A stretch of DNA of 64,000 nt from Blepharisma stoltei ATCC 30299 (lineage: Eukaryota > Protista > Ciliophora), in the NCBI GenBank assembly GCA_965603825.1, contig CBFDEM010000054.1, forward strand, positions 558,001 through 622,000. The letters run 5' to 3'. The number at the start of each line of letters is the position of its first letter. Position 1 is the stretch's first letter. Position numbers and translations under genes: made by a program. Of this stretch, positions 3,189 to 44,410 are shown one piece after another. Under the pieces are notes generated by a model. It searched no databases. It was not told where the DNA came from and was given only the letters and a program-made list of their open reading frames with translations.

Positions 3189-4181
3189 TTACATTTGTAT
3201 AAATAATTCCCTTTTGAGTTCTTCAATTTCTTTTGCTTTTTGTGCGTCTAGTTCTTCGGTTATCATTTTTATTTCTTCTTGCATATTTACTTTCATCTGC
3301 TCTAACACTTGCTTCATAATCCCTCCTTGGTCTTCTAGCTCTTTCATCTGTAATTTGTAATCAACAGTGACTTCTGATATTCTATTAACTTTTTCTGTAA
3401 TATATTTTTCCATAATATTTTCAAGTCTTTTTTCAACTTCACTAGAAGAATTTGAAATATTAAAAAATCCTGAGAAATCGATGGTTTCACTTTCTTCTTC
3501 ATCAGGCTCTGTTTTTATATGCCTATCAATGCTTTCAGCTGTGGAGAGGTTTTCTGTCATAGAAATGCTGAAATCATTTGAATTTTTTCTGAATGATGAA
3601 TTTAGAGTGGTATGCTTGAACTTTCTTGAAGCAAGACGGACCTCTAAGTCGCTATTTTGGGATTTTATGTCAGTAAGAGCTTTACTTGAGGTGCTATGAG
3701 TGAGTTGTTTTTGGTTGCTGAGGATTTTCTTAACTATGCGATTTTCCTTCACAGTTAGTGCTGGAAGTTCATTATCCTCATTTTCTATTTTTTCCTTATT
3801 GCTTTCAGCAGTTTCTATTTTTTTAGGCATTTCTTCTGACTCTGAAGGCTTTATCTCTGGAATTTTTACTTGATCTGGATCAGGTTCATTTTGAAGAGCC
3901 TTGATTACTTGAGGTTTCATTAAAAGGTTACGTATTTTCAATTGATAATCATAAAATCGCGTATCATTATGAAGCTCATAGAATTCAATTGCTTTACTAT
4001 ATATATCAATCAGCTCATGTATGGTAGTGGGATCTCAGGATTTCTCTAATTGGTTTTCTTTGTTTAAAATTTCAAGCGCAAATTTTGATGGTAGAGAATT
4101 TTGAAGAAGTCCTTGAGGAGAAAGAGTGGGGAACACAAACTGATTTTGGAGTTTATTGGAGCCTGGACTAAAAAAATACAT
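3189..4181 (-). CDS. Hypothetical protein with C-terminal coiled coil, about 330 aa
   Basis: Track ORF 3189-3941 extends upstream through a TGA(Trp) at 4035-4037 to ATG at 4181. Confidence 0.7.
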
Positions 4182-26308: not shown

Positions 26309-26381
26309 AAAATTTAAAACGCATTTATTTTAGAATCTTATAAGCTGTATAAAAAAATGTAAAATAAATCGCATAGAAGTT

Positions 26382-27578
26382 ATGGGAATTTGTGTTCAGA
26401 AGCAGAAAAAAATAGAATCTCCTGAAGCCATTCATGAAACAAAAGAAAAAGAAGTTGCAGAAGTCCCGCAGCGGCCAGTAAGAAAGCAGCATGTCCGATT
26501 ATCAGTTGTACCTTCAAAAACTCCTCTATCCCGTATTGACTCAGACTTACTAACTTCAGTCAAAGAAGCTATCACAAAATCAGAAAAATCCCGAGGAATC
26601 CCAGAAGACGTCCAAAACGACTCAAAGAACTCACGTATTTTGATTGCTGGAGTTCCAAATGAAAATCGGCAAAACGGCTTTGAAGACAAAAAAATGAGAT
26701 TTGAAGGAGAAAACGCTAATATGAGCTATGTCAGCTCAATCGGAGTTGGAATTGCGTGCAAAAAAGGACTTAAAGAGGACCCTAACAACCAAGATGACTT
26801 TACTGTGTTACTAGACAAAGCCTTTCAATTTTTTGGCGTTTTCGATGGACACGGGGCTTATGGGCATGAAATTTCGAATTATATACATTTGCTGCTGCCT
26901 AAATTGATTATTAAGCATGAACAGTTTGAAGAAAATATTAGAGAAGCTATCATACAGTCGTTTTTTCACGCAAACAGTTCTTTAGTTGAGCAGTGCGACA
27001 AGCCTGAATCTACTTATGACTGTATGATGTCAGGGACTACAGCAACTACTTTACTGATTAAAAACAAACACATATTTATTGGCCACGTCGGAGATTCAAG
27101 AGCCGTTTTATGTTTAAAAAATGGAGAAGCTATTCAAGCTAAGCGACTAACTACAGACCACAAACCTACCTTGCCAGGTGAGCTGCAAAGGATCCAGTCT
27201 TGTGGAGGAGAAGTTAAGCAGCTGCCTGATGATGTTCCACATAGGATTTTTATGAAAGGAAAAGATTACCCAGGGCTTTCTACAAGCAGAGCTCTAGGTG
27301 ACGCTATCGCTCAAATGGTAGGCGTTTCTCCTCTGCCTCAATTTGAAGATATCCCTTTTCAAGACAACTTTGAATACCTAATTATGGGCAGTGACGGTGT
27401 TTGAGAGTTTATAAAAGACCAAGAAGCTGCTGATACCATTGCCAAATCAGGAAAAAACGTCCGACAAGGAGCTCAAACCTTAGCATCCTTAGCTTGGCAA
27501 AGGTGGATAACTACAGAAGAAGATGTGGTTGACGACATAACGGTGTTAGCTATTCATTTACCGAGTTTGTTGAAATAA
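26382..27578 (+). CDS. PP2C/PPM protein phosphatase with N-terminal MGIC acylation motif
   Basis: NQDD, GVFDGHG, SGTT, HVGDSRA, DHKP, SRALGD, GSDGV-W(TGA)-EF, DDIT; stop TAA 27576-27578. Confidence 0.95.
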
Positions 27579-27589
27579 CATAAATTATA

Positions 27590-28609
27590 CTAGCTGAATT
27601 CTTCTGTTCTAGGGAACTCTTCTTCTATTAAATGCTCGAGGTTGTTTCTGTAATAATCTAAACCTACCATGAAGTCATTAGCGTTTTTGGTGTCTTCTAC
27701 GAATTCTCGATATTTTATTCTTCTAGCGACCTTTTGCAAGTCGAAAAAGTAATATTGGCTCATTAGTGGGTTAATGAATAATTTTTTGGAATGGGTTGAC
27801 TCAAGGGTGTTATAATTTCCAAACTTTCCTAAAATTGAACTGATTATTTGGAAACCTACAAAATTCTCTCTTGGCATCCTTGACTGTATAAATTCACTTG
27901 CCTTTATAAACCCTTGAACTTCAGGCATAGTCTGCAGCAAAGAAAAATTCCCCAAAAATCCTCCTGCTTCTGTTATTTCTGCTATAGCTCTAAGTGTAGA
28001 ACAGTCAGAAACTCCTTGAAACCTATCAGTTCCAATACCAATACACCCTAAAATCGCATTAACTCTTGCTTGCTTGACAGCAAGAATGCTTAAAATGTCT
28101 TCTAGCGGTGTTCCAAGGTCTTTTTCATCTCCCGCCATTAAGCTATCACTTCCCCCATCAATCAAAATAACAAGCTGAATATTATGTCTTTGTATAACAG
28201 CCTGGTAAGCTGCTGTAAGTTTATCAACCCCTCTCCTTTTAAAAGCATAAACTGAAATTTCTTGGTTTAATTCTTCTCTAAACCATTGGCATAAATACTT
28301 TTCAACAAAAAATCCTTGATTACTCGTATCAACTAGTCCGTGGTTTGTATCAGCAGTTATTCTCATACAGACAATTGGCATCGCAGGATTAGATTCTCGC
28401 AAAATGACTTCGCCATCTGCATTTTTGATCTCGCTGAAACTCATGTTGCCTAAAAACACTTCTTTTCCTTGAGATTTAAGAGAGAAATACAAAGGAAGAC
28501 CTTGGACTACATCATAGACACCTCCGCAGCCACTTATTAAGATAGTGCTGGCTTCACTAACTCTTTTCCAAAAATCTAATTGAAGACCATTTCCATAATA
28601 AGCTTCCAT
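27590..28609 (-). CDS. DUF1152-like protein
   Basis: ILISGCGGVYDV..GLPL...L...GKEVFLGNMSFS, LIDGGSDSLMAGDE..LGTPLED, FINPLMSQYYFFDL match my recollection of prokaryotic DUF1152. Confidence 0.8.
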   Translation of the reverse strand: MEAYYGNGLQLDFWKRVSEASTILISGCGGVYDVVQGLPLYFSLKSQGKEVFLGNMSFSEIKNADGEVILRESNPAMPIVCMRITADTNHGLVDTSNQGFFVEKYLCQWFREELNQEISVYAFKRRGVDKLTAAYQAVIQRHNIQLVILIDGGSDSLMAGDEKDLGTPLEDILSILAVKQARVNAILGCIGIGTDRFQGVSDCSTLRAIAEITEAGGFLGNFSLLQTMPEVQGFIKASEFIQSRMPRENFVGFQIISSILGKFGNYNTLESTHSKKLFINPLMSQYYFFDLQKVARRIKYREFVEDTKNANDFMVGLDYYRNNLEHLIEEEFPRTEEFS

Positions 28610-28690
28610 TATATTTTAAGCTAAAATTATAGTCTCCTAAATCATAAAAGACTAGTTTATTCATATGTTTCATTAATGAGAAGTCCTAAA

Positions 28691-29890
28691 TTACTTATAA
28701 AACTCAAACTCAGTATCGCTTTTCTTTACCACATTTTTGTAAGCCTTCTCAAAGTCTTTAGGAAGAATCACATATCTGTTTCTCCTCACAGCCAGCAGCC
28801 CTGCTTCTTGGCAAATAGCAGAAATATCGGCAGCACTGATTTTCTCAGGTCTGTTGACGTAATCTTCTAAGTCGACTTCATCTGATAAGTTCATTTTGCT
28901 AGTAACTGTTTGGAAAATTAGCCTTTTTTGTCTTCTATCTGGCATTGGGAACTCAATTTTTCTATCTAATCTTCCAGGTCTCATAAGGGCGCTATCTAAG
29001 GTATCAGCTCTGTTAGTAGCCATAATCACTTTTACGTTGACGCTTTGGTCAAACCCATCCATTTGGTTTAGGAGCTCTAATAAAATTCTCTGGACTTCTC
29101 TATCAGCTCCAGTTTGAGCGTCAAATCTTTTGGTAGCGATTGCGTCAATTTCGTCAATGAATACGATGCTTGGTGCGTTTTCTCTTGCCAATCTGAATAC
29201 ATCTCTAACCATTCTTGGGCCTTCTCCCAAGTATTTTTGCACAAACTCGCTGCCGACGACTCTTATGAATGCTGCTGTAGTGTGGTGAGCCACTGCTTTT
29301 GCAAGCATGGTTTTTCCTGTCCCTGGAGGTCCGTACAGTAAAACACCTCTTGGAGGGTCAATTCCAATCTGAGCATAGAGCTCATGGTTTGTAAGAGGTA
29401 GCTCTACAGCTTCTCTGATTTCTTGTTTCTGTATATCAAGACCGCCAATGTCTTGATAAGTGACTTCAGGTTTTTCACCTACCTGCAAGAGCTGAATTGA
29501 CGCATCTGTTTCATTAGGCATTATATCGACTACACTGTGAGAATGCCTATGAAGAGCTATTGAAGAAGATGGCTTGAGGAGCTCTCTGTTTAATGTTGAT
29601 AGAACTCTGACATAATAATTTGACCCAGCAGTGCTAGATACAATTGCGTAATTTTCGTCAATGAGCTCTAAGAATTGACCTATCACAAGAGGCACTGACT
29701 GAATTCTTTTGATTTCTTCTTTGGCTCGGATGTATTCACGTTTGAGATTTTTCTGCTCGTCTTTGATGTAATCTGCCTGGATGGTGAGGAATTCGAGCTC
29801 TCTTTCGAGGGATTTCATGCGCTGGTAGAAGTCGCTGGTGTCGTCTTCGATGTTCATGTCCATATTGGCTGCTGAGTCGACTAGTGCCAT
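28691..29890 (-). CDS. RPT3: 26S proteasome AAA-ATPase subunit RPT3 (PSMC4)
   Basis: [61 protein letters not shown]; first ATG at 29890. Confidence 0.98.
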
Positions 29891-30010
29891 TTTCAATTAT
29901 AAGAATTCTATCAAATTCATGTCAGAAGTGGAAATTTTCTGATTTTTTAGAAAAACTGTTTAGGCTAGGTTGCTTTTATACTTAAAACTTAAAAGATTTA
30001 TAAATATAAA

Positions 30011-30943
30011 ATGGAAGCACATAAAGTAAGAAGAAAAAATCTATCATTAGGGATTCCAAGCACAAAGGCTTCTACACCAATTTGACCTCTTTCGCCTAGA
30101 TCTCCTTCTCTTGAAGGAAACCGTCTTTGTGAGCCAATGACTCCTAGAAAATTATTGTACGAGTTTCAGTTAAGAGATGCAATAGTAAGACAAGAAATTT
30201 GTAAAAGCGAAAGAGAAAACTGCGACATGAAAAAGAGCATTGATGAGCTAAAAATTGAAATTTTGCAAATAGAAAAGGAGCTAAATAAAGAAGAAAGATT
30301 GCTAATTAGACAAGAAGAAGACTTATCATCGCTACATTCAAAAATATTGAAAAATGAGCTATTTCAAATTGAAAACACAGAAAAGATCAAAGAGTCTGTT
30401 GAAAACTACAAAGAGCTCATAAACTATCTTAATGATAGTATTGGAGAGGAAGCAAACTATTTTAACAATACCAAACAAATCACAACAAATTTAAAATACT
30501 CACTACATGCTCAAAATAATGACGTTATGGAAAACATGAGAGAGCTTATCAGCATATATGAAGACCAATTAAAGTTTAAAGACCATACAATTAAAGACGA
30601 AGAAGATATATTAAATAGAGGAAACCAAATAGAGTCAAATAAAAATCAAGAAATTGCAGAAATGATATCAGAGCTAAAAAATGAAGAAATTTCAAATCAA
30701 AAATATATTTATAGCTTACAAAAAAAAGTAGAAATAATTAATGCAGGAAAATTGCAGAAAAAGATAGAAAGAGACTTAGTGATACAAAAAGAGTCCCTAA
30801 ACTCAGCGGAAGATGTGTTAAGCAGGCTGAAGCAAAAACTAAAAGCATCAGAAAAAATGGAGCCGTTTGTTAAAAAACTGGGATTAAAAATCGAAGGACA
30901 TAGAGATCGAATTATCCGGATAGATTTATCATTAAAAAAATAA
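30011..30943 (+). CDS. Hypothetical coiled-coil protein, 310 aa
   Basis: Extends upstream of the track ORF through a TGA(Trp) to ATG 30011. Confidence 0.75.
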
Positions 30944-30960
30944 TTAAACTTTTATATTAA

Positions 30961-32364
30961 TTATAACCCAGGTCTTTTTTCATTAACAATATCAGCTGAT
31001 CTGATATCAGAAAAATCATCAGCAGCGTTATGCAAAGCGCTTTTCCCAGCGAGAATCAGTCCTTTTGGAATTTTGCTGTCTGGGCACATTCCTTTAAGCT
31101 TGATAATAACTTCATGCTCTTCTCTGACAGTTTTAAGCATTTTCAGCATTCTCGACACACTTTTTACTTTATTTACCAATTGTGCTTTTCGGTTTTCTCT
31201 GATATTGTCTTCTAATTCCTTAAGCCTGGATTCGTAATATTCGTTATCAATATCATCGTTTGGCTTTATTTTTATAACAGTCATAATCATTTCCATAACT
31301 TTTTCTATCACAAATGGAATACTTCAGCTAAAAACATCCATGAAATTAGGGAGTAGATAAGGATGCTGTGTATAATTATACTGTTGAATATTCAGCGTAT
31401 TATTATCGAATTTTATGATTGCGCCTTTGTTTCCATACACATCACAATAATTTGGAGCAGAAAATATTGTGATTACTGTTGGAAATTCGCTTGCGCCGTT
31501 TCATCTGTGCATTTTGTATCCATCCAGCTGGACTTCATGAGCCCTTATGAGAGAAATTATATCATTGTCCCTCAAAAATCTATCTGCAACTTCTTGACCA
31601 AAAATATAACTGCATCCTCTTATATCATTATACCTGAACCCTTCAATTAATCTTCCTTCCGAATGATCTATAGGATCTGACCACAAAAGATCACAAAATA
31701 CCCCATTTCGAGGGGTTTCTATAAATCTATTAATTCTAACTATATCGGCTAGAGTTCGTAATTCTGGAGATATACCTCCATGAATATTCAAAAATTTTTT
31801 ATTTACAAGGCATGCCAACGGTAAACAGTCAAAACTTTCCATAAAATTTTCATAAACTTCTAAGTCGTATTTATATAGGCATTCTTGTCGGAAATTAAAA
31901 AATGAAGTCATTTGTCGACATTCATGGTTTCCTCGGATCATAAAAATTGTGTTAGGGAAATTAATTTTAAGAGTATACAAATAGAGTATCACTTCCAAAG
32001 AAAATGAGCCTCTATCTACATAGTCTCCTAAAAATAGGTATTTTGTAACCTCAGGGCTGCCTCCTATTGAAAACATTTTAAGCATGTCATAATACTGGCC
32101 ATGCAGGTCACCTACAATAGTTACTGGATCTTGAAGTGACAACAAATTTGGCTCTTCCTTAAATAAATTTGTTGCTGCATCTATAATCTTCAGCACATCA
32201 GCTTTATATAGCCTTCCTTCCCTTTGAAAATGATCCCTTAATACTTTTCAAGCAGGTTTGCTATCATTATTAGGAAATAGTAAACTTCTTGGCAGTGGCT
32301 GATGGGGCGGCGCTTTTAATTCTTTGACTGTTCTGTTGTTTAAAGGGTCGCTTAAAGCTTCCAT
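30961..32364 (-). CDS. CNA1: Calcineurin A (PP2B catalytic subunit), 467 aa
   Basis: GDLHGQ, GDYVDRG, RGNHE, SAPNYCD, CnB-binding FMDVFS-W(TGA)-SIPFV, CaM-binding [11 protein letters not shown], autoinhibitory D.VNEKRP; three TGA(Trp). Confidence 0.96.
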
Positions 32365-32526
32365 TTTTTTTTGTTAGTTATGCCTGAATTTCTGCGATGA
32401 ATAAATATTGATTATGCAGATTATAGATAATTAAAATTATTATCCTAAGCTGAATTAATGGTTAAGTACTTTATTTTTAATAGGTTTATGCTCTGTCAAA
32501 TTTGATATTGTAAGGCTAATTTTAAT

Positions 32527-33759
32527 ATGGAAGAGTTTTTGAGAAATTCTGGGTTTAGCGAGCCTTTGATAAATGCAGTCCATACTTTAGGATACAAACA
32601 CCCAACTGCTGTTCAGTCAGAATGCATACCTTTGATCTTAAAAGGTGAAGAAGTCAAAGCAAAAGCCCCAACTGGCACAGGAAAAACAGCAGCCTTTGCA
32701 TTGCCGATTCTTGAGCTATTAAGACGAGACCCTTACAGCGTGTTTGCTTTAGTAATATCTCCTACAAGAGAGCTTGCATTACAAATTAATGATCAATTCA
32801 AAGCATTTGGCTCTAATATAAGTGTAAAAACCCAATGCATTGTGGGTGGAGTCGACATTTTAAGGCAAGCACAAGCTTTGACACAAATAAGACCACATAT
32901 TGTGATCGGAACTCCTGGAAGACTTAATACTCTTTTATCACAGCCGGACATCCTTGAAATTTTTTCAAATTTGCAGTTTCTTGTGCTGGATGAATGCGAT
33001 TTTTTGGAAGAAAGCCAAAAAGAAGATCTTGACCAAGTAAAAGCTTTGATTTCACCATCAAAAGTCCTGAATTTTTCAGCTACACTTGACGAAGGGCCTA
33101 CATTAGGAGAAAGAGCCAATATAAAAGAATACTTTTTACTAGTCCCTGACGTGGTAAAAGATAATTACTTAATAAAGCTTTTGGAGAGGCATAGTGATAT
33201 AAATATCATTGTGTTTACACAAACATGCCCAGAAGCATTTTTACTGAGTAAAACATTGGAAGAAATGAAAATCAGCGTCTTGCCACTGCACTCATTGATG
33301 TCTCAGCATGCAAGAGAGGCAAGTCTGCATCATTTTAGGTCTGCAAAAGCAGCTGTATTAGTAGCAACTGATGTAGCTGCAAGAGGATTGGATTTACCTC
33401 AAGTGAGGCTTGTAATAAATCATCATGTCCCTAGATCCAGTAAAACTTATCTTCATAGGATTGGAAGAACTGGTCGTGCAGGGAGAGGTGGAATGGCCAT
33501 TACCCTCGTAACACAGTTTGAGGTTTCGCTAGTTTTGCATATAGAAAAAAAATTAAACACACATTTAGAAGAGCTTTACAACGAAGAAGAGATGAAAATC
33601 CTGGAAGATGAAGTGGTTAATACGCTAAATAAAGTCACAAATATAAAAGCAGTGATTTCACATAGGGTAAAACGCCCTTCTTTGGATAACAAAAAGAGAA
33701 AAGAGCTGCTGGTGTCAAAGTTAAAGAAAATTCAGAGACTTTCGAGAAATACGACTTAA
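32527..33759 (+). CDS. DBP8: DEAD-box RNA helicase DBP8/DDX49-like (DECD variant)
   Basis: TGTGKTAAFALPIL..L..DPY.VFALV.SPTRELA.QI.DQF, DECD, SAT, ARGLD, HRIGRTGRAGR. Confidence 0.85.
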   Translation: MEEFLRNSGFSEPLINAVHTLGYKHPTAVQSECIPLILKGEEVKAKAPTGTGKTAAFALPILELLRRDPYSVFALVISPTRELALQINDQFKAFGSNISVKTQCIVGGVDILRQAQALTQIRPHIVIGTPGRLNTLLSQPDILEIFSNLQFLVLDECDFLEESQKEDLDQVKALISPSKVLNFSATLDEGPTLGERANIKEYFLLVPDVVKDNYLIKLLERHSDINIIVFTQTCPEAFLLSKTLEEMKISVLPLHSLMSQHAREASLHHFRSAKAAVLVATDVAARGLDLPQVRLVINHHVPRSSKTYLHRIGRTGRAGRGGMAITLVTQFEVSLVLHIEKKLNTHLEELYNEEEMKILEDEVVNTLNKVTNIKAVISHRVKRPSLDNKKRKELLVSKLKKIQRLSRNTT

Positions 33760-34362
33760 TATGGATTTAAATATTTTTGGCAAATAATTAGTGTTAAATT
33801 TTACTGTTTACTTAGATTTTATAAGGATTTCTGGCTTTTTCATATTTAATTATTTTTGAAATTTTAAAAAACTAATCTTGGAATCTTAATTCAATGAACT
33901 CTTTTTATAATTATGACGAAAATAGTTAAAAATCAGATTTAAGCTTTAAATTTTAAATGCTAAATAAAAATATGTTCTCCTCCTTGTGTTAAAATAACTC
34001 CATGATTAATCGAAATTTTTTAAATATTATTTCATAGCTCATATCAGAATTCAAATTTTAAAATGACTTAGTCAGTAATTCTCTTTATTTTTTAAAATTA
34101 TATAGCTCAGGACGCATAATAGATAGTCCTGGGCTATAATGGAATTCCATCCCCAAACAAAATTTTTTTGAAAACCGAATAAAAAATAAAAAAATATTTT
34201 CAGCTATTGACATATGGTCTGTTTATAATTTCCCTTTTCACCTAATATCAATTAACAATGATAGTATAATTTATCCTCGATATCCTTCAAATTGGTCGTA
34301 TTTTATTATCAAATTATCTATCTTCTGATGTGAGAAATGAATTATTATTGTTAAGTTTGAAG

Positions 34363-35958
34363 ATGGGATCTTGCCTAAAAAAGCAAGGAAAAAGCATGAG
34401 AATATCTCAAGAGCATTACACTATTGAAACCTCAATAAGAAAGCATGATTCAGCTCATGACTCTCTAAGATATGTTTTTTTACAAAAAAGTGAACTTTAT
34501 ATAGATATTCACCTAGATTTTGAGTTTACCAAAGTTCTTGGCCACGGAAAATACGGAAACGTGAATTACGCTAAAAGTAAGGATCCACTTATTAAGCAAG
34601 AATTTGCTGTAAAAAGTCTTATTAAGCCTATGATTGAAGATAAAATGTATACAATTCATCGAGAACTTGAGATTCTGCTTTCTGTTGACCATCCAAATAT
34701 AGTAAAATTTTTTTACGCGTATGAAGATCCAAAGTTCATTCATATAGTAACTGAGTATTGCTCAGGCGGAGATTTGCTTTCTAAGCTGTGCCAGGTCGGG
34801 AAATTCTCTGAAGTAGAGACTGCTACTATAATCAAAAAATTACTTGGCGCACTGAACCATTTGCATGGGATGGATATTTGCCATAGGGATATAAAGCTTG
34901 ATAATATACTTCTTGCTTCAGAAGATTCTGTGTCAAATATAAAGCTAATTGATTTTGATTTTGCTAAAAGAATTGACAATCTTCACCTTGACATGAACAC
35001 AATTGTAGGAACTTTGCATTTTATTGCCCCAGAAGTCTTTGATAGAGTATGTGGCACATCTGCAGATTTGTGAAGTCTCGGCATCGTTATGTATGTTCTG
35101 CTTGTCGGGAAGCCGCCATATAGAATTGACAGTGAAAGTGAAGTCCTTGTGCAAATAAAAAATAGAGAACTGGATTTTAATGATGAAGAGTATCAAAGAA
35201 TAAGCCCACTTGCCAAAGATTTATTATCAAAACTACTAGACACTGATTATAATAAAAGAATTACAGCTAGAGAAGCTCTAAAACACCCATGGTTTGTTAC
35301 AGTGAACCAAAAATCAAATGACTGTAATAACGAAAGAATCTTAAAAAGACTGAGACAATACCAAGTAAAAGGAAGATTGAAGAAAGAAATAATGAAAATC
35401 ATTGTGAGGATTCTGGAGCCAGAGGATATTCAGAACTTAAAAGAAGTCTTTGAAAATTTAGACACTGGCCATAATGGATATATCACTTATAAAGACTTAG
35501 AAAAAGGCTTAAGCACGATTGGGGTAACTGATGCTTCTGAGATTGAGCGTATTTTTTAATTAGAAATTTGAAGTTGTGCAGAAACAACTATAAAAGGCAG
35601 ACTAAGATACTCTGATTTTCTTGCAGCAACACTTAATAGGAAATCTGCGCTCACAGAATCTACTCTGTGGGCTGCATTTAAATACTTCGACTATGACAAC
35701 TCTGGGAAAATGACCCCAGTAAATATATATTCTGCACTGAAAAGAGCAGGAGTAGATATAACAGATGAAGATCTAGAAATGATGCTAAAAGAAGAAGGTA
35801 TTTTGTTGACTCAAAATATTGACTTTTCAGAATTCAAAAAAATTGTCCTTCGTAATCTTTATATAGCTGTTGAAAATTTTATAAGAAAAACTTCTTTGCA
35901 GTCTAAACGAAGTATTGGGGCTTCTGGTCTTGAATGGAACGGGTTCAGCTTCATGTAA
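34363..35958 (+). CDS. Calcium-dependent protein kinase (kinase + EF-hands), 526 aa; intron 35549-35563
   Basis: MGSC N-terminus, GHGKYG, AVK, HRDIK, APE, DL-W(TGA)-SLG, EF loops DTGHNGYI and DYDNSGKM. Confidence 0.92.
35549..35563 (+). other. 15-nt spliceosomal intron
   Basis: GTATTTTTTAATTAG; A at position 10; in-frame TAA; removal gives EIEQIW..YSDFLAAT. Confidence 0.92.
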
Positions 35959-36023
35959 AACCCAGTCAATATAAAAAATAATCTAATAAAATTAATCATT
36001 TTTATCATTAGGAAGAATCTTAA

Positions 36024-36923
36024 TTATTCTTTTTTCTCTTCTTCTGCTGCCAATTTACGTTGTGGCTCGACTTCTGCAATGCGGATGTTTGCGGTGCCTA
36101 TTTGTGCTTGGATAAGAGGGTCATTCCAAGGTCCTGCGTTACTCATAAGGCAGCCTACTTGACAATTGCAATTACCTCCTAAGAATTGTGGAACGTTATC
36201 TGCAGGGGCAAGTTCTAATAATTTTTTTTGGAATTTGCTGCCTTCAGTACTGATTTTTTGTTGAGTTCTCTCATCAAGCCATGGTCTTATCACTTTCCAA
36301 GCCATCGAGAACAGTGTTGGAGTATTCACAATAAACATCCTTCCAAGCATTTCTGGGTAGTAATCCTGACCAATTTTAGAAGCCATCTGCACAAACTTGT
36401 ACACCTTCTTGCTCATCAGCTTCATAGAAGACCCTCCCAGGTCCAAAATCGTCAACGACTGCTCTACAGGATGTCCTGCAGCTACTGCACATGCTGGAAT
36501 TGTTATACTAAGCATAGTTTCATACGATTTAACGAAGTATCTTAGCATCCTATCTTCTGTCGTAATTTCAAACAGCCTCTTTAAATCGAGCGCCCCAATC
36601 CTTTCTATATAAATAGGTCTCCCATGTGAATCCGTCTTATGAAAGCCATGAGGATAGCACGTTTTTACCTGTTCAAGCTCTGGAAACTCATAAGACATGA
36701 TTTGGTCGACTTGGAACTCTTCTCTCCACTTTAGATAATTTTGGAACATCTCCATCGCTTTATCAAAGTTGAACTTTCTGGCACGTAGAAATCTGCCTAA
36801 GGTATGGTCATCAAAATTTCCTCCCAGTGCTTCTTTGAATCGGACAAGAACTTGGCGCTCTTCTGGGGTTAGAGTTCCTAGAAGGGTAGGTAGAGGAGTT
36901 GTCAGCTGTTTACGCTCTTCCAT
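36024..36923 (-). CDS. SEC14: SEC14-family phosphatidylinositol transfer protein (CRAL-TRIO-N + CRAL-TRIO)
   Basis: RFLRARKF, YPHGFHKTD..GRPIYIE, QDYYPEMLGRMFIVN.P, PWLDERT..KI, VPQFLGG.C, S..GPW. Confidence 0.96.
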   Translation of the reverse strand: MEERKQLTTPLPTLLGTLTPEERQVLVRFKEALGGNFDDHTLGRFLRARKFNFDKAMEMFQNYLKWREEFQVDQIMSYEFPELEQVKTCYPHGFHKTDSHGRPIYIERIGALDLKRLFEITTEDRMLRYFVKSYETMLSITIPACAVAAGHPVEQSLTILDLGGSSMKLMSKKVYKFVQMASKIGQDYYPEMLGRMFIVNTPTLFSMAWKVIRPWLDERTQQKISTEGSKFQKKLLELAPADNVPQFLGGNCNCQVGCLMSNAGPWNDPLIQAQIGTANIRIAEVEPQRKLAAEEEKKE

Positions 36924-37171
36924 TGTTTATTGGCTTAATAAACCAATAAACAATGGAAGAGCATAAGCAACAAACGATTCCGCTGCCCGCACTCCTAGGA
37001 ACACTAACGTCTGAAGAGCGGCAAATACTGCTGAGATTTAAAGAGTCCTTGGGGGGAAATTTTGATGATGATACCTTAGGCAGATTTCTTCGTGCAAGAA
37101 AATTCAAATTTGATAAAGCAATGGAGATGTTTCAAAATTACTTAAAGTGAAGAGAAGAATTTGGAGTTGAT
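36705..37171. repeat. Inverted repeat centred on 36938 (about 233-bp arms): first 73 codons of SEC14 duplicated head to head
   Basis: Arms align codon for codon with no gaps; perfect 20-bp inverted repeat at 36914-36933 / 36943-36962. Confidence 0.97.
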
Positions 37172-40100
37172 GGTAAGCGAATTTATGAGCATCTAGAGAC
37201 AATGGCGTTCGGCGGGGTAATAAAAGAACCATTAACTCTTTGGGACATAGTAAATGCTCTGCCAAAAAAATCAATAGCACAATTTGTATTTCAGCTGCTA
37301 GCAAATAATAATTTTGAGTATCAATCAATGCAGACTGCAATTAAGCTTTTGCAAGCCCTTATCACCCCTGATAGGTCAAATTCACCATTCAGCTATTTTT
37401 ATTTTCCAGGACCAGGTTGCGGTTTACAGTTAAACCCAGAAGATTTTCAAATTTTCCCGTTCCAAAAAGCAATTTCAGCTTGTTTTTGGATAAGACTTGA
37501 AGACCTAAACTTAAACACCCCTTCAACTTTAATGCTATTTCACTCACAAGGAAATGGCGGGATTGAAGCATATTTTATTGGAAACAAGCTTTATTATAGA
37601 GTGCTTGGCGTTGATTATTCCCCACCAGTAGAAGGCTCTAATGGAATTTTGCTTCACGAATTCCAGCCTGAAGATTGGACATTTCTAGCATTTGAGCACG
37701 AAAAACCCAAAGTTGGGAAATATCAGTTAAGAGTGGTAGTAAATGGAGAAGAAGTGCTGAATTCTCCGATGGATTACCCAAAATTCAAATCTCCGAACCC
37801 TATTTTGACGCAAGCTGCGTTTTGTCTAAGCTTTATAGGCCAAATCAAGTGCATCATGATTTTTGATGACTTGATTTCTGTGCAACGGATGAAGTCAATA
37901 TACCAAAAATCGAATGGAGCTATCTCACAAGGTCATGAAGCAATAAAAGCACTAGTTCGAGGAATTGATAAAAATTTGAATAAAAAGCTTGTGCTTTTTT
38001 ATCATCCACTCAGGACGAATAATAATATAGCTTATGATGGAGTTAGAAAAGCAGATGCCAAGTTTCTAGGAGGAACTGGGGTCAAGCTAGTAAATCAAAG
38101 TAGAATGTCATGCTTTGGTGGGGTCTGTGCACTCTTACCAATTTTAGAAAAAATAAAAAATATCCCTATAAAAACCTCAGAATTATTAAGTGATTGATTT
38201 GGGCTTCTAATAACATGCTTAAGAGATAGGCCAGAAAATCAAGTCGAAGCTTGTATAATGAAACTTTTTAAAGCCGCCCCTGAACTTCTCTTGCAATTTC
38301 CGCCTAACTCTATAACTGAAGAAATAGTCCAGCAATTAGAAGAAATTTCTCAATTTGTAATGCCTCAATTGCGAGACCAATTAACTGGACATTTACTATG
38401 GTTCTTAGATATTTGGAAAAAAACAGAAAAAAATACTCAGGTAAAATTATTTAAATTATTAAAATCTTTATATACGAAGGCACCAAAGCAACTTAGCAAG
38501 CAGGTTGACATTAAAATGATCCTTGAATTGCTGATATGTCATTATGGAGGAAATGATATGATGGTTTCTGAAGAGCAAAATAAAGAGCAGATATGTGATA
38601 TTGTGTCAGTAATTGAAATTATATTTTTAACAGTTGGAGAAGCTATGGCTGCTGAGATAAATAATATAATTTCTGCACTCTTCGGCAAATCATCTTCCTT
38701 TATTCAAATTCAACTATTGCAACTACTAAAAACTCTTCTTAGTGACAGGCCTGGCGATGTATTCGGCGCTCCAGCTTCAGTTTTTGCTAAAAATTTCATT
38801 GATGCATCAGGTCTTGAGCTTTTGCTATTTTTAATATCATCTTCAGTCTCAGAAGTTAGAACTTTGAGTCTTGCATTAACTGACACCATTTTAAATTACT
38901 CTACCAAGACTCAGATTGCAAGCCATAAAGAAATTTTTGTCTATATAAGTTCAATTGTATTGCCGACTCCTAAAGGCATGAGTGGCTCTTTTAAATATTG
39001 GCAGCATTCCATAATATCACCGCACGATACTTTTCAATCAATAAGTTCAAAAGAGGAAGAATCAGTCGAATTTATTACTTCAAAACTACCATCACTTCAA
39101 ATATCTGATGAAAATATTAAAGGGCCACCTATGTCAAAATTCAAAAAACAAATGAAATTTGGGTTTTTAGATGAAGAAGAGGAAGAAATTAAAGATACAA
39201 AGGAGACTAAATTCGACGAAGAAGAGGAAGATTTTGGGATTAAGCCTCCACCAGCTCCATCATCAAAGAAAAAAATCAGTTTTACTTTTTCTGATCCAAA
39301 ACCGATCGAGGCGCCTCGAGAAGCTCCTAAAAAACAGGGTGGGTTTATATTTGACGAAGATGAAGATGCTCCATTAGCTCCACCACCACCTAAGAAAAAT
39401 ATGAAAATGAGTTTTGATGAAAATGCTTTCTCAGCTCCCAAAAAAGATGCCCAAATCAATTTTGATGAAGAAATTTTAAAAATCCCAGCCTCGAAAAAGG
39501 AGCCAAAAATGAATTTTGAAGAAAATGTCATAGTTGCCCCTCCTCCACCTAAAGGAAAAAAACCAAAAAGGAACTTAATGATTTTTGAAGACGCTGAAGA
39601 AGATATACAATTAACAGAATTACCTATGACTGAGAGATTTATAGAGCCAGAAGTCTCAGAAAGCATTGACTTATCAAAAACTCAAAATTCCTCAAAAATC
39701 GTTAAGTCCTTCAGCCAAGGCAGAAAAATGCCCAAATTTTTATCAGACGAGCTGATTATTGACACAGAAAAAATCAACGAAAATTACACCTTTGGGGGAG
39801 AAAAAGGGGAAGCTATAAAGCCTGAAGATGAAGGAGAAGATGATCCTTTAATTAAAGAAATACGTGACATGGCCAAAGATTGCTTAAAATATATGCACGG
39901 AGAGCTTGCAGTAAACCAAGAATTCCAGTTCTACCCTTTGCCTCCTACATTTCGTCCCCAAACAGTAAGAGGATTAAAAACTATAGATCTATCAAGCACT
40001 TTTAAAAAAGTGTCAGAAAACCACCCAATAATTGAAGAAGTCAGCTCAGAAATGTCCCCTCACGAATCTTTAGCCACTCCAAAGCGACATGAAGAAGATG

Positions 40101-43100
40101 GCGTTTATCATGCAGTTCTTGGAATTGTTCTCAAAAAAACTATTGAAGGTGCTGACATTATTGATGACTCTGACCACATAGAATCTAAATCCGGTTTAAC
40201 TTTATTACAAGAAATCGTATCCCGAGCCTCTTTAGAGCTAAAGCATAAAGCCATGCAAGATATGCTGATGCTTACCAAATGAAACTCTTCTAATTCCTCT
40301 ATTTTAGCCCAAGACGCTGATTGGCATTATTGGTTGCTTAATTTATTATTTGAGACTCCTGAGCATCAAGATGAAGGAATTGCGATTTTTGACTTAGGCT
40401 CAAGAATACATACAATAGTTATGAAACAAGCTATGCTAGCTGACGAAGAAGGCTGGAAACATATAAGGAGACTTATATATTGGTACGAAATGAAGAGAGA
40501 CATAGAAAAAGCCAGAAATATAGTAAAAAGTTTACTAGAAAAACTCAGTGAGTCCTTACAGTCAAACTCTATGGGATGCAGACCTGCACTTGTGTCGACA
40601 CTATGAAAAAATTTGGTAATTACAAGTTATTTGTTAGAAGAGTTTGTGATTTATTCAAAATCAAGGTCAGAGGAGGAGCTTGGGGAGTCATTAATAATGG
40701 CTGACGAATGGGAAGATGCTGCTGTTATGGATCTTTATTTCCAATTGCTTGACCCTATATGGCCAGTAGTCCTTTTTAGCAATAAAGAATCAAAGTATGA
40801 AGAAGAACATATCCAGCTTATTAATACTATAGAAAAAGCTGCACAGACAGCGTTCAAGACTGATATTCAGCTGCTTATTTTTGAACCTCCAGGAGAGCTC
40901 AAGCCAAGAGGACTATTTATTAAAACAATCATGCACTTGGCCTGCATGAGCGTAAAAGCTAGCACTAATGAAGAACAGACAAAGCTTTGGCTGTCTATTG
41001 TGGAAAGGTTGATTAAATTTATATTGCTGGTGTCTGAAGCAGGGAAAAAACAAATGCAAAGCCAGACGACAAAAGTTCTTAATGCATGCATTTTATATAC
41101 AGTTGGATTCTTTGCTTCTTATTTAGACGAGCTCAGAGAAGATCAGAAAACACAGCATATTCAAACATCGGTCACAAATATTTTGAAATATATTTTTACA
41201 GTCTACATATCAAGCTTAAAATCAGGCCAAAATCAAGGATTTAAAGGATTTTTAAGATCTGGCTTTGTTTCTACAACAGTAAGTGAAGATGTTGCTACAA
41301 TAATTCTGCAATATTTATCTGACACTGATATGGATCGCTTAGAAAGCATGATGGCTGACAATTTTGAAACTCTTGACTATCTAATCACCACTGACGACTG
41401 GAAATTCGCTTTAATATCGGCAGCTTCCCAAGTAAACGACCAATTTGATAACAAAATTAGAACGAAAAATATTTGTCAGCATAGAGAAAAAGTCGCAGAA
41501 AAACTTAGCAAGGAGTGAGACGCATTAAGCAAACAAGTTGAGGAAACCAATACAAGAATAAATAACCATGTGCAGAAAATTGCTAACGATAAATCAAGTG
41601 ATGAAGAAAGGAAAATAAATAACGCAATTATCTATAATGAAGAAAGAACGAGGCAAAGGAAGCATATGCTGAATAAAAGAATGAGACTTTTAACTGAATG
41701 GAGAGGGCCGTGGCATGTTGAACAAGAAATCAAACTTGAGCCTTGCCAGCTAATGGATTGGCAATACACTCGACCCATTCTAAAAATAAGATCAGATAAA
41801 TTCAAGCCTTTTATGAAACAAGAACAAGTACAAATTTCAGAAAATCCCAATTTATTAAAAGAGCTTTCGCCAATTATTTTAAGGAAAGCTTCAGAAATTG
41901 AATATGAAGAAGATGATAAATCTATGAACACTGAGTCTGAAGAGCCAAGTGCGAGAGCTTCATTAAAGCCAAAAATTGACTCTTCTTTAGCTTCTATTTT
42001 AAGCCATGAAAGTTTTAGTATCCAATCAGAAGTCGGAATTATTAATACATTAACAGTGAGATATGGAATACTTCAGCTCATTACATCAAAAAAAGAACAA
42101 AAATTGCGGTTCATTTATGACCCAGAAGTCAGGCACAAATTTCAATCAAATGTAGAGCTTTTCGAGCATTCAGCATCACCAAATAAATCATATATAAAAG
42201 ATTGGAATGTAGAATCTTTGGATGTAGTTTTTCCGAAAACCTATGTAATGAGAAATACAGCCGCTGAGTTTTTCTTTAATGATGGCAGAAGTGTATTAAT
42301 AAACTTTACTAATCCTAATGAGAGGCATGATTTTGTGAGCCAAATTAAAAAAATAAAGAAAAATGCTGTTAAAAATTTGGAATTTTTCAAAAAACCAAAC
42401 CCAGTAAAATTCATGGCAGAAAGCGGGATGACTGAAAAGTGGATGAATTGGGAAATCAGCAACTTCGAATATTTAATGTATCTGAATTATGCAGCTGGAA
42501 GATCTTATCATGACTTAACACAATATCCAGTTTTTCCATGGGTTATTAATGACTACCAATCTCCTACCATTGACCTTAATAATGAATCTATATATAGAGA
42601 CCTTTCCAAAAACATGGGCAGCTTAGGCTCAGTTGAAAGAGCCCAAAGCTTCAAAGAGAGATTTTCTTCATTTGGCTTCCCTGAAGAAATTCCTCCATTC
42701 CATTTCGGCTCTCACTACAGCAACCCTGGAATTGTTTTCCACTATTTATTAAGGCTATTCCCATACTCTGAAGGCGCCCGAGAGCTTCATGGCGGCAAAT
42801 TTGACCTCCCAGACAGACTTTTCAGCTCAATTTCTGAGTCTTATAGGCTTTCTACTGATGATATTGCTGATGTCAGAGAATTAATCCCTGAATTTTATTA
42901 TCTGCCTGAATTTTTGATCAATAAAGAAGACTACGATTTTGGCTTAACACAGCAAGGCAATAAAATTAATAATGTCCAGCTTCCTCCATGGGCGAATTCT
43001 GCTTACGATTTTATCAGAATCAATCGAGAGGCATTAGAATCCGATGTTGTCTCAGAAAGAATCCACAACTGGATAGACCTTATTTTTGGATATAAACAAA

Positions 43101-44410
43101 GAGGCGATGAAGCAGAAAAAGCAATGAACATTTTTTATTATATGACTTATGAGTCTAATATAGATCTAGACAAAATCGAAGACCCTACCCTGCGAGCTTC
43201 TATTGAAGCTCAAATCGTTCACTTCGGAAAAACCCCTTCACAATTATTCAAAAAGCCTCATCCGCAGCGAGAAAATCCCCACAAATTCAGCCCTGGCCCA
43301 ACAGTTATATCTAAAGAAGCCAAACTGAAAATTTATTTCCCTCAATATCGCAAGCCTTTTGATAAGCCTTTTAGCTTCATGAATTATTTTGATCTCCCTG
43401 ACAAAGCTATACTAAAAGCTAAAATGTATAAAGATAAAGAAATCTTCGCAATCAGGAGAAATGGGAATTTAATTAAATATAGCTGGTGGCCTACTCCTAT
43501 GGGTGAATGTAAAACTCCATTTACATGTGCGAATAATAAAGAAATTCAGCTACTAAAGGACCAAAAATCATGGACTATTGAAAATCAAGACAGATCAGCT
43601 ATAGGATTTAACGCCCCAATTGAGATTATGGACCAAGGAAAAATCATAGTGAAAGGAGGGTTTTGGGATGGAAGACTGACGGTCCAGAAAGCAAATGTAA
43701 AGGACCATCCTCATAAATGGTGCCATCATAATACAATTACATGTATTGATATAGATGAAGAAGAAAAAGTAGGGATAACTGGAGGAAAAGATGGAGATGT
43801 ATTGGTCTGGCAAGTTAAAGGAGATACATGGCAGCCTAGATGGCAATATATTGAGCATGATGATCAAGTTATGTCAGTCACTATATGTCAAGAACTTCGG
43901 CTATTTGCAAGCTGTTCTTTGGATGGAACCTGCAATATTTATTCGCTTATGAAAGGCAGACTTATTAGAGTTATCAGTCTTCCAAATTTTTCCCCTATTT
44001 ATATGGTCAAATTTTCCCCAGCGGCTCCTGCAAAAGTAGTGTTATTTTCTTCTCAAGAAAGCTGCTTATACTCATTTTCTATTAATGGAGAACCTTTATA
44101 TAGAGTTCATGAAAGGTGTGTCCATATGACGAGTCCTATTATTTTGAGAAATTTAAACCAACAGGAATTTCTTATTTATGGGACTGAAACTGGAGATATT
44201 GTGATCAGATATGCATCGACACTTGAACCGTTGAGGAGATTTTCAATTACTGGAGGATCTCCTGTGCTGACGTTGATGGCTAATAAAGACCTCAGATTTC
44301 TGCTTGTTGGGTGTGCTGATGGAGAATTGGGCGTATTAACTGATCCTGACGCGACTCTTTTGGTATTGGAAAAGCAATGACAACTTGGAAATGTACTTAA
44401 TCTCGGCTAA
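36953..44410 (+). CDS. BEACH-domain protein (ConA-like, PH, BEACH, WD40) with an N-terminal SEC14 CRAL-TRIO-N segment, 2485 aa
   Basis: Six track ORFs share one frame and are separated only by TGA. Motifs: WEISNFEYLMYLN..AGRSY.DLTQYPVFPWV, HFGSHYS, GKFDLPDRLF, DVRELIPEFY, WIDLIFGYKQRG, FGKTPSQLF; TAA 44408-44410. Alternative start ATG 37202. Confidence 0.9.

Follow-up and report, generated by a model that had tools for sequence, protein, structure and literature searches.

Background

How can two genes come to diverge from a spacer of only 29 nucleotides, and why should that spacer form an almost perfect palindrome when the coding sequences on either side of it have long since drifted apart? 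These questions are raised by a locus of the heterotrich ciliate Blepharisma stoltei ATCC 30299. The published genome of this species measures 41 Mb, is gene-dense, carries introns of 15-16 nt and reads UGA as Trp (PMC9942806). The locus lies in a stretch of 64,000 nucleotides (assembly GCA_965603825.1, contig CBFDEM010000054.1, here contig 54, positions 558,001 to 622,000 of the forward strand), which we refer to as the window; coordinates are those of the window unless another contig is named. The initial annotation, made from the letters of the window, described a head-to-head duplication of a SEC14 gene with old arms and a pristine centre, and attributed that centre to selection on, or homogenisation of, a minimal symmetric bidirectional promoter or cruciform. 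For the genome-wide comparisons reported here, the B. stoltei macronuclear assembly (41.46 Mb, 64 contigs) was searched.

Results and discussion

Geometry of the inverted repeat

The palindrome is the innermost part of a longer inverted repeat, in which 36706-36937 mirrors 36939-37170 (232 nt per arm, 80% complementary) with a single nucleotide between the arms. When the whole 64-kb window was scanned, 36706-37170 was the sole inverted repeat 50 nt or longer within 3 kb. Its parts are as follows.

36706..36937, minus strand: left arm, consisting of a 14-nt leader (36924-36937) and SEC14 codons 1-73
36924..36952, no strand: inter-ATG spacer, two mirrored 14-nt leaders around base 36938
36939..37170, plus strand: right arm, consisting of a 14-nt leader and codons 1-73 of a chimeric gene, with a complete CRAL_TRIO_N domain and no CRAL_TRIO

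Re-measurement agreed with the initial annotation in placing the divergent ATGs at 36923 (minus) and 36953 (plus), 29 bp apart, and in folding the spacer on base 36938 with 13 of 14 pairs matched; the lone mismatch is C36934 against A36942. The spacer holds two CCAAT motifs in inverted orientation (36929-36933 and 36943-36947), and an in-frame TAA occupies positions -6 to -4 of both ATGs. Measured from first ATG to first ATG, the remaining divergent pairs in the window are separated by 1376, 1135, 581, 120 and 93 nt. The 29-nt gap is thus the smallest divergent spacer of the window, threefold below the next, and the bound of about 120 bp given for the other pairs was slightly too generous. Extremely short head-to-head spacers may be common in such compact genomes. 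In a related organism (JGI metagenome 3300016857, stretch 1447-2501), the ATG of a BEACH homologue lies 10 nt from the start of its called divergent neighbour, the gene calls being taken as given.

The two genes that carry the arms

Long open reading frames appear at this locus only if TGA is read as Trp. With that code, the arms are found to be the 5' ends of two quite different genes.

36024..36923, minus strand: SEC14-type gene of 299 aa, stop codon TAA, with Pfam CRAL_TRIO_N and CRAL_TRIO; an annotated gene in the NCBI record
36953..44410, plus strand: chimeric gene of 2485 aa, defined by an open frame with TGA as Trp, by Pfam matches and by the NCBI gene call

The minus-strand gene has the architecture of the SEC14/CRAL-TRIO family, namely a CRAL_TRIO_N domain (PF03765, 3.5e-08) followed by the CRAL_TRIO lipid-binding domain (PF00650, 8.3e-33), with both matches over their cut-offs. 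The plus-strand frame stays open from 36953 to 44410 and includes six in-frame TGA codons; codon 66 of the plus arm is a TGA where both full SEC14 copies have TGG (Trp). The public annotation likewise has a 2485-residue gene starting at the plus-arm ATG, 29 nt from that of SEC14. Its domains run in the order CRAL_TRIO_N, ConA-like lectin, DUF4704, PH_BEACH, BEACH and WD40. The CRAL_TRIO_N match covers residues 31-62 (6.6e-09, 36.2 bits against a cut-off of 23), and the remainder is recognized by Beach (2.2e-116), PH_BEACH (7.1e-11), NBCH_WD40 (1.5e-19) and DUF4704 (2.4e-09), together with a Laminin_G_3 match of 24.8 bits that falls slightly below its cut-off of 27.6. PH_BEACH, BEACH and C-terminal WD40 domains, preceded by N-terminal ConA-like and DUF4704 regions, are the marks of a BEACH protein of the neurobeachin/LRBA type.

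Compared with SEC14/CRAL-TRIO proteins, of which the minus-strand gene has both domains, the plus arm supplies a complete CRAL_TRIO_N only: no piece of the chimera gave a PF00650 match in Pfam, and homology to SEC14 ends at residue 73. The chimera is without the CRAL_TRIO lipid-binding domain and hence is no SEC14 protein. The description of the locus as a SEC14 duplication therefore holds for the minus arm, which is the 5' end of a SEC14 gene, but has to be amended for the plus arm, which heads a chimeric BEACH gene and not a second SEC14.

Among ciliates, Tetrahymena bcd1 encodes a neurobeachin/LRBA-type BEACH protein (PMC10398878). The chimera shares with such proteins the ConA-like lectin, DUF4704, PH_BEACH, BEACH and WD40 domains and, unlike the BEACH relatives examined, adds a 72-aa N-terminal CRAL_TRIO_N region and lacks a 76-aa block conserved in them.

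The fusion junction

The point of fusion was located by aligning the chimera with its BEACH relatives (at most 48% identical) and with a paralogue on contig 46 of the same genome (56% identical).

37166..37177, plus strand: fusion junction Val72-Asp73-Gly74-Lys75, from the alignment with BEACH relatives

The relatives and the contig-46 paralogue all start M-D-G-E..(I)LYEELE..GG.IK.P, and the chimera aligns with them from Asp73/Gly74 onward. At the nucleotide level, the window reads GTT GAT GGT AAG at 37166-37177 where the relatives' genes open ATG GAC GGC GAA. By this alignment, the change from SEC14 to BEACH homology lies no more than about two codons from where BEACH ancestrally began, and the BEACH part in effect lost only its initiator Met. 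A micro-intron at the GTAAG of 37174 was considered and rejected, since no 15-16-nt GT..AG unit fits there and excision would destroy the BEACH N-terminal homology.

CRAL_TRIO_N is absent from the first 100-150 residues of every BEACH relative examined, and tblastn of the DNA upstream of the relatives' BEACH genes detected no SEC14 N-terminus (E >= 0.87). Four copies of the SEC14 N-terminus occur genome-wide, none of them beside the contig-46 BEACH paralogue. The fusion is specific to this gene among all sequences compared. A search for relatives with the fusion or the palindrome came no nearer than a BEACH match of 46-48% identity and a SEC14 from outside Blepharisma of about 65%; a scan of metagenome contigs yielded no match to the palindrome core, and in the literature that we searched neither this locus nor any CRAL_TRIO_N-BEACH architecture is described.

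A separate difference lies farther downstream. After Pro104 (about 37264/37265), the chimera is without the 76-aa N-terminal helical block that every relative and the contig-46 paralogue conserve (alignment columns 39-114); in size this loss roughly matches the gain of the 72-aa CRAL_TRIO_N region. The germline-type record described below has no internal eliminated sequence (IES) at that point.

Age of the arms and selection on them

A third copy made it possible to place the changes between the arms on a tree. It is an unlinked SEC14 paralogue on contig 28, whose protein is 88% identical. The comparison of dN/dS type that had been proposed for the arms was carried out by the Nei-Gojobori method and counted 35 synonymous and 12 nonsynonymous differences between plus and minus arm, distributed over codon positions as 10/4/33. 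The manual figure of about 29 synonymous codons in the initial annotation was close, and its 11 amino-acid differences across the 73-codon arms were recovered exactly. The proportions of synonymous (pS) and nonsynonymous (pN) differences were:

Plus arm versus minus arm: pS 0.74 (saturated), pN 0.07
Plus arm versus contig-28 SEC14: pS 0.62, pN 0.07
Minus arm versus contig-28 SEC14, arm only: pS 0.51, pN 0.04
Minus gene versus contig-28 SEC14, 270 codons: pS 0.68, pN 0.06

Singleton changes on the tree of the three copies (plus, minus and contig 28) gave the following branch counts:

Plus branch: 18 synonymous, 8 nonsynonymous, ratio about 0.12
Minus branch: 13 synonymous, 4 nonsynonymous, ratio about 0.08
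Contig-28 branch: 8 synonymous, 3 nonsynonymous, ratio about 0.10

Because synonymous sites are saturated, the duplication is old, and the ratio of about 0.1 on each branch, with the low pN, agrees with the earlier proposal that the copy has been under purifying selection. A neutral plus branch is rejected (P = 2.5e-7), which argues that the plus arm is translated and constrained about as much as genuine SEC14 genes are. The substitution pattern thus shows both arms to be protein-coding and under purifying selection.

The minus arm and contig 28 share 26 sites, against 17 and 11 for the other pairings, and the plus branch is the longest. Together these counts indicate that the inverted duplication is at least as old as, or simultaneous with, the duplication that separated contigs 54 and 28. 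At saturated sites the order of events can be read no further than this: the inverted duplication may have come before the contig-54/contig-28 duplication or together with it. Heterogeneity of synonymous conservation along the arm was not significant (P = 0.16). In raw counts, the two full SEC14 paralogues agree at 48 of 72 third positions in the first 72 codons and at 101 of 198 in the rest; the higher identity at the 5' end may hint at extra constraint or at an old conversion there.

Germline IESs in the arm and its paralogue

A second public record, GCA_914767885.1, represents the same locus but contains TA-bounded inserts that the window lacks, which identifies it as an IES-containing (germline-type) record. 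It has the same head-to-head arrangement; since it appears to use the same contig backbone, it is no independent proof of the join. One insert lies within the plus arm.

37139..37140, plus strand: TA at nucleotides 187-188 of the coding sequence, where the germline-type record has a TA-bounded IES of 110 nt in the plus arm

At the identical TA, the contig-28 SEC14 gene has a 72-nt TA-bounded IES (3190-3261 of its germline-type stretch), while the minus copy adjoining the plus arm has none. IES lengths in B. stoltei peak periodically, and the two most populated peaks are those at 72 and 110 bp (PMC9942856). In their restriction to the germline-type record, their bounding TA and their periodic-peak lengths, the 110-nt and 72-nt inserts are thus typical of ciliate IESs. 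The two have no recognisable sequence similarity to one another. The simplest reading of these positions is that the IES was ancestral to the SEC14 gene, was copied along with the arm and was later precisely lost from the contig-54 SEC14. An IES at the same TA marks the arm as a duplicate of germline DNA, and an origin of the arm as a retrocopy is ruled out by its presence in both the arm and the contig-28 copy.

Over the 7-kb stretch 32564-39499 of the window, the germline-type record has nine IES-like inserts of 76-435 nt, following window positions 33246, 34704, 35801, 37140, 37439, 38029, 38439, 38481 and 39077. Several of them interrupt coding sequence, and one of 174 nt has long terminal inverted repeats.

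A synteny breakpoint at the palindrome centre

Four genes between 26.3 and 36.9 kb of the window are collinear with contig 28 at 77-88% protein identity, and this collinearity ends exactly at the SEC14 ATG. A gene lying past SEC14 on contig 28 lacks any recent paralogue on contig 54, so that the palindrome centre is also the edge of a rearrangement or a duplication. The paralogous block spans about 10.5 kb (window 26334-36923, contig 28 about 65000-75340); of the four shared genes, one is an unnamed ORF and the others encode a metallophosphatase, an EF-hand protein kinase and SEC14, and several interleaved genes are unshared.

Inverted duplication by fold-back leaves arms head to head with no spacer or one of a few nucleotides, and the arms here are separated by 1 nt. 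A boundary at the centre fits fold-back at a broken end, a mechanism suggested by geometry alone. Our interpretation, which we consider probable, is that an ancient germline fold-back partial duplication gave rise to a chimeric CRAL_TRIO_N-BEACH gene, and that the palindrome follows incidentally from constraint on its two half-sites. In this sequence of events, the 14-nt SEC14 leader and the first 72-73 codons, which encode the CRAL_TRIO_N helices, would have been copied head to head by fold-back in the germline, and the copy would have been fused in frame to an adjacent BEACH gene of the neurobeachin/LRBA-like kind, at its start codon. The chimera and its parent SEC14 would since have shared a 29-bp divergent control region. 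A 24-nt block around the ATG, acting as a gene-specific core promoter, start-site, 5'UTR or initiation element, would have travelled along and would now drive the BEACH gene, with transcription predicted to start at or just past the centre and to give leaders of no more than 14 nt.

The conserved centre

The block in question joins the leader to the first codons.

36939..36962, plus strand: 24-nt block of leader plus first 10 coding nucleotides, identical to the contig-28 paralogue

Only one base sets the block apart from its mirror counterpart at 36914-36937. On the three-copy tree the leader has undergone 1 change in 14 nt, whereas third-position or synonymous rates would predict 7-11.6, and this conservation beats chance with P = 0.007 to 0.0001, a significance that is moderate since only 14 nt are concerned. 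The initial annotation was therefore correct that the non-coding centre is conserved beyond neutral expectation. In the 41-Mb genome, the exact leader 15-mer is confined to these paralogous 5' ends. A role as a general start or promoter motif was considered and discarded, as the 13 genome sites with one mismatch head no long ORFs (longest 74 aa). The leaders of SEC14 orthologues in Stentor and two other relatives differ, having ...TATAA before the ATG, so the 24-nt block is specific to Blepharisma.

It is the contig-28 copy that separates conservation from symmetry. Local alignment upstream of its SEC14 gene found no remnant of an inverted arm, with scores no higher than those of shuffled sequences. 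Contig 28 thus keeps the half-site with no mirrored partner, which implies that the constraint on each half by itself suffices to yield a near-palindrome. A palindrome or cruciform selected for its structure should conserve complementarity beyond what each half requires; here the mismatch is uncompensated and the half-site is identical in a copy that is not palindromic. The claim that symmetry or homogenisation maintains the centre accordingly finds no support in view of the contig-28 paralogue, and there is no need to invoke selection for symmetry, a cruciform, homogenisation between the arms or a 5' hairpin covering the AUG. Each half is constrained independently, most likely as a core promoter, 5'UTR or initiation element captured by the BEACH gene. 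Part of the leader, the A-rich bases before the ATG, could be translation context and not promoter.

Predicted RNA folding bears on the hairpin directly. The centre contains a perfect 20-bp stem (36914-36933 with 36943-36962) that has the AUG inside it and is extended by imperfect pairing. A transcript begun in the opposite arm is predicted to form a hairpin of -59.9 kcal/mol, whereas RNA from the centre or leader onward is unstructured (z = 0.38). A 5' hairpin burying the AUG, as modelled, is physically possible and would require transcription to start inside the opposite gene. Since upstream starts bury the AUG and central starts leave it unstructured, start sites are expected within or just past the spacer, with leaders of at most 14 nt.

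A bolder proposal, which we put forward only tentatively, is that the 24-nt block, the CCAAT leader plus 10 coding nucleotides, constitutes a complete and portable heterotrich core promoter. Placed in mirror image, two such blocks would amount to a bidirectional promoter of 29 bp that is sufficient by itself and gives mRNA leaders no longer than 14 nt, and transfer of the block by fold-back would have sufficed to bring a 7.5-kb BEACH gene under SEC14-type control. If true, this would be the first defined promoter element in heterotrichs and among the smallest bidirectional promoters known.

Alternative explanations

The chief competing view is that the symmetric 29-bp core is itself selected, as a palindromic protein-binding site, a cruciform or a symmetric bidirectional promoter. 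Its appeal lies in the 13 of 14 paired bases, the 20-bp perfect stem (36914-36933/36943-36962), the smallest divergent spacer of the window and the two inverted CCAAT motifs, but the sole mismatch sits uncompensated near the centre and contig 28 has the identical half-site plus 10 coding nucleotides without a mirrored partner or a remnant of one, so that we think this view unlikely. Gene conversion between palindrome arms is known from other systems, and arm-to-arm conversion that homogenises the core while the outer arms diverge would account for the central 49 nt having the highest identity. Within-palindrome conversion, however, does not explain why the plus leader and 10 coding nucleotides are identical to an unlinked locus on contig 28; moreover, a mismatch is retained 4 nt off centre and synonymous divergence is back from codon 4. 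Conversion therefore strikes us as decidedly improbable despite its precedents elsewhere.

Two further alternatives question the chimera or the join. The plus arm might be a leftover pseudo-exon or 5'UTR, with BEACH translation beginning at the internal Met84, a residue that aligns with a Met of one BEACH relative (P0127). We hold this to be very unlikely: on the plus branch the ratio is about 0.12 and neutrality is rejected at P = 2.5e-7, no stop separates arm from BEACH (TGA being Trp, and the arm's TGA aligning with a conserved Trp), and residues 73-83, which a start at Met84 would delete, are homologous to conserved BEACH N-termini. Least plausible of all is a misjoin of two paralogous loci at the centre by the assembler. 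The germline-type public record, apparently built on the same contig backbone, leaves some room for it, but arms only 80% identical make reads unambiguous, the inverted sharing at the join amounts to just 14 nt, the plus arm, a sequence present once in the genome, runs on unbroken and in frame into BEACH, and the exact mirror register of the arms is not expected from a misjoin. Germline fold-back with independently constrained halves remains our preferred account.

Relation to known systems

Chimeric genes formed by partial duplication, with capture of a promoter and 5' exon, are known, for example the jingwei-type fusions of Drosophila. The present gene resembles these in that a duplicated 5' fragment with its initiation region was fused in frame and kept by purifying selection. 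It departs from them in that the duplicate is inverted and lies 1 nt from its parent, with which it shares a 29-bp head-to-head control region, in that the junction falls on the recipient's start codon, and in that the event can be dated by a shared germline IES.

Palindromes primed by fold-back or hairpins at DNA breaks are likewise familiar, from the Tetrahymena rDNA palindrome to the fold-back inversions of yeast and tumours, and the locus shares with them head-to-head arms with practically no spacer and a synteny breakpoint at the centre. Unlike the giant Tetrahymena rDNA palindrome, which is made developmentally, this one is inherited through the germline, has arms of 232 nt and is old (80% identity), its mechanism being suggested by geometry only. 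With the bidirectional promoters of compact genomes it has in common divergent genes, a very short common upstream region and CCAAT motifs in both orientations. At 29 bp, however, the region is far shorter than usual and its halves are paralogous copies of one leader; it is a putative promoter, the geometry of two ATGs 29 nt apart being what the sequence shows. What sets this case apart is that the mirror arms abut, that the join falls on the recipient's start codon, that the chimera has been retained long enough for synonymous sites to saturate, and that a shared IES dates the event.

Conclusions

The locus has implications beyond the pair of genes that it contains. A near-perfect palindrome can arise without selection on symmetry, which calls for caution in reading palindromes as structural elements. 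An IES common to the arm and an unlinked paralogue, and gone from the adjacent copy, provides a modest natural example of how an IES can persist in some paralogues and be precisely lost from another. To our knowledge, no minimal promoter has been defined for heterotrichs; should the 24-nt block prove to be a promoter, it would give ciliate biologists a minimal one. Above all, this is a clean, datable case of a new protein architecture arising together with its expression signals, in which a BEACH trafficking protein gained a CRAL_TRIO_N head and, probably, the initiation region of SEC14, both of which have long been kept.
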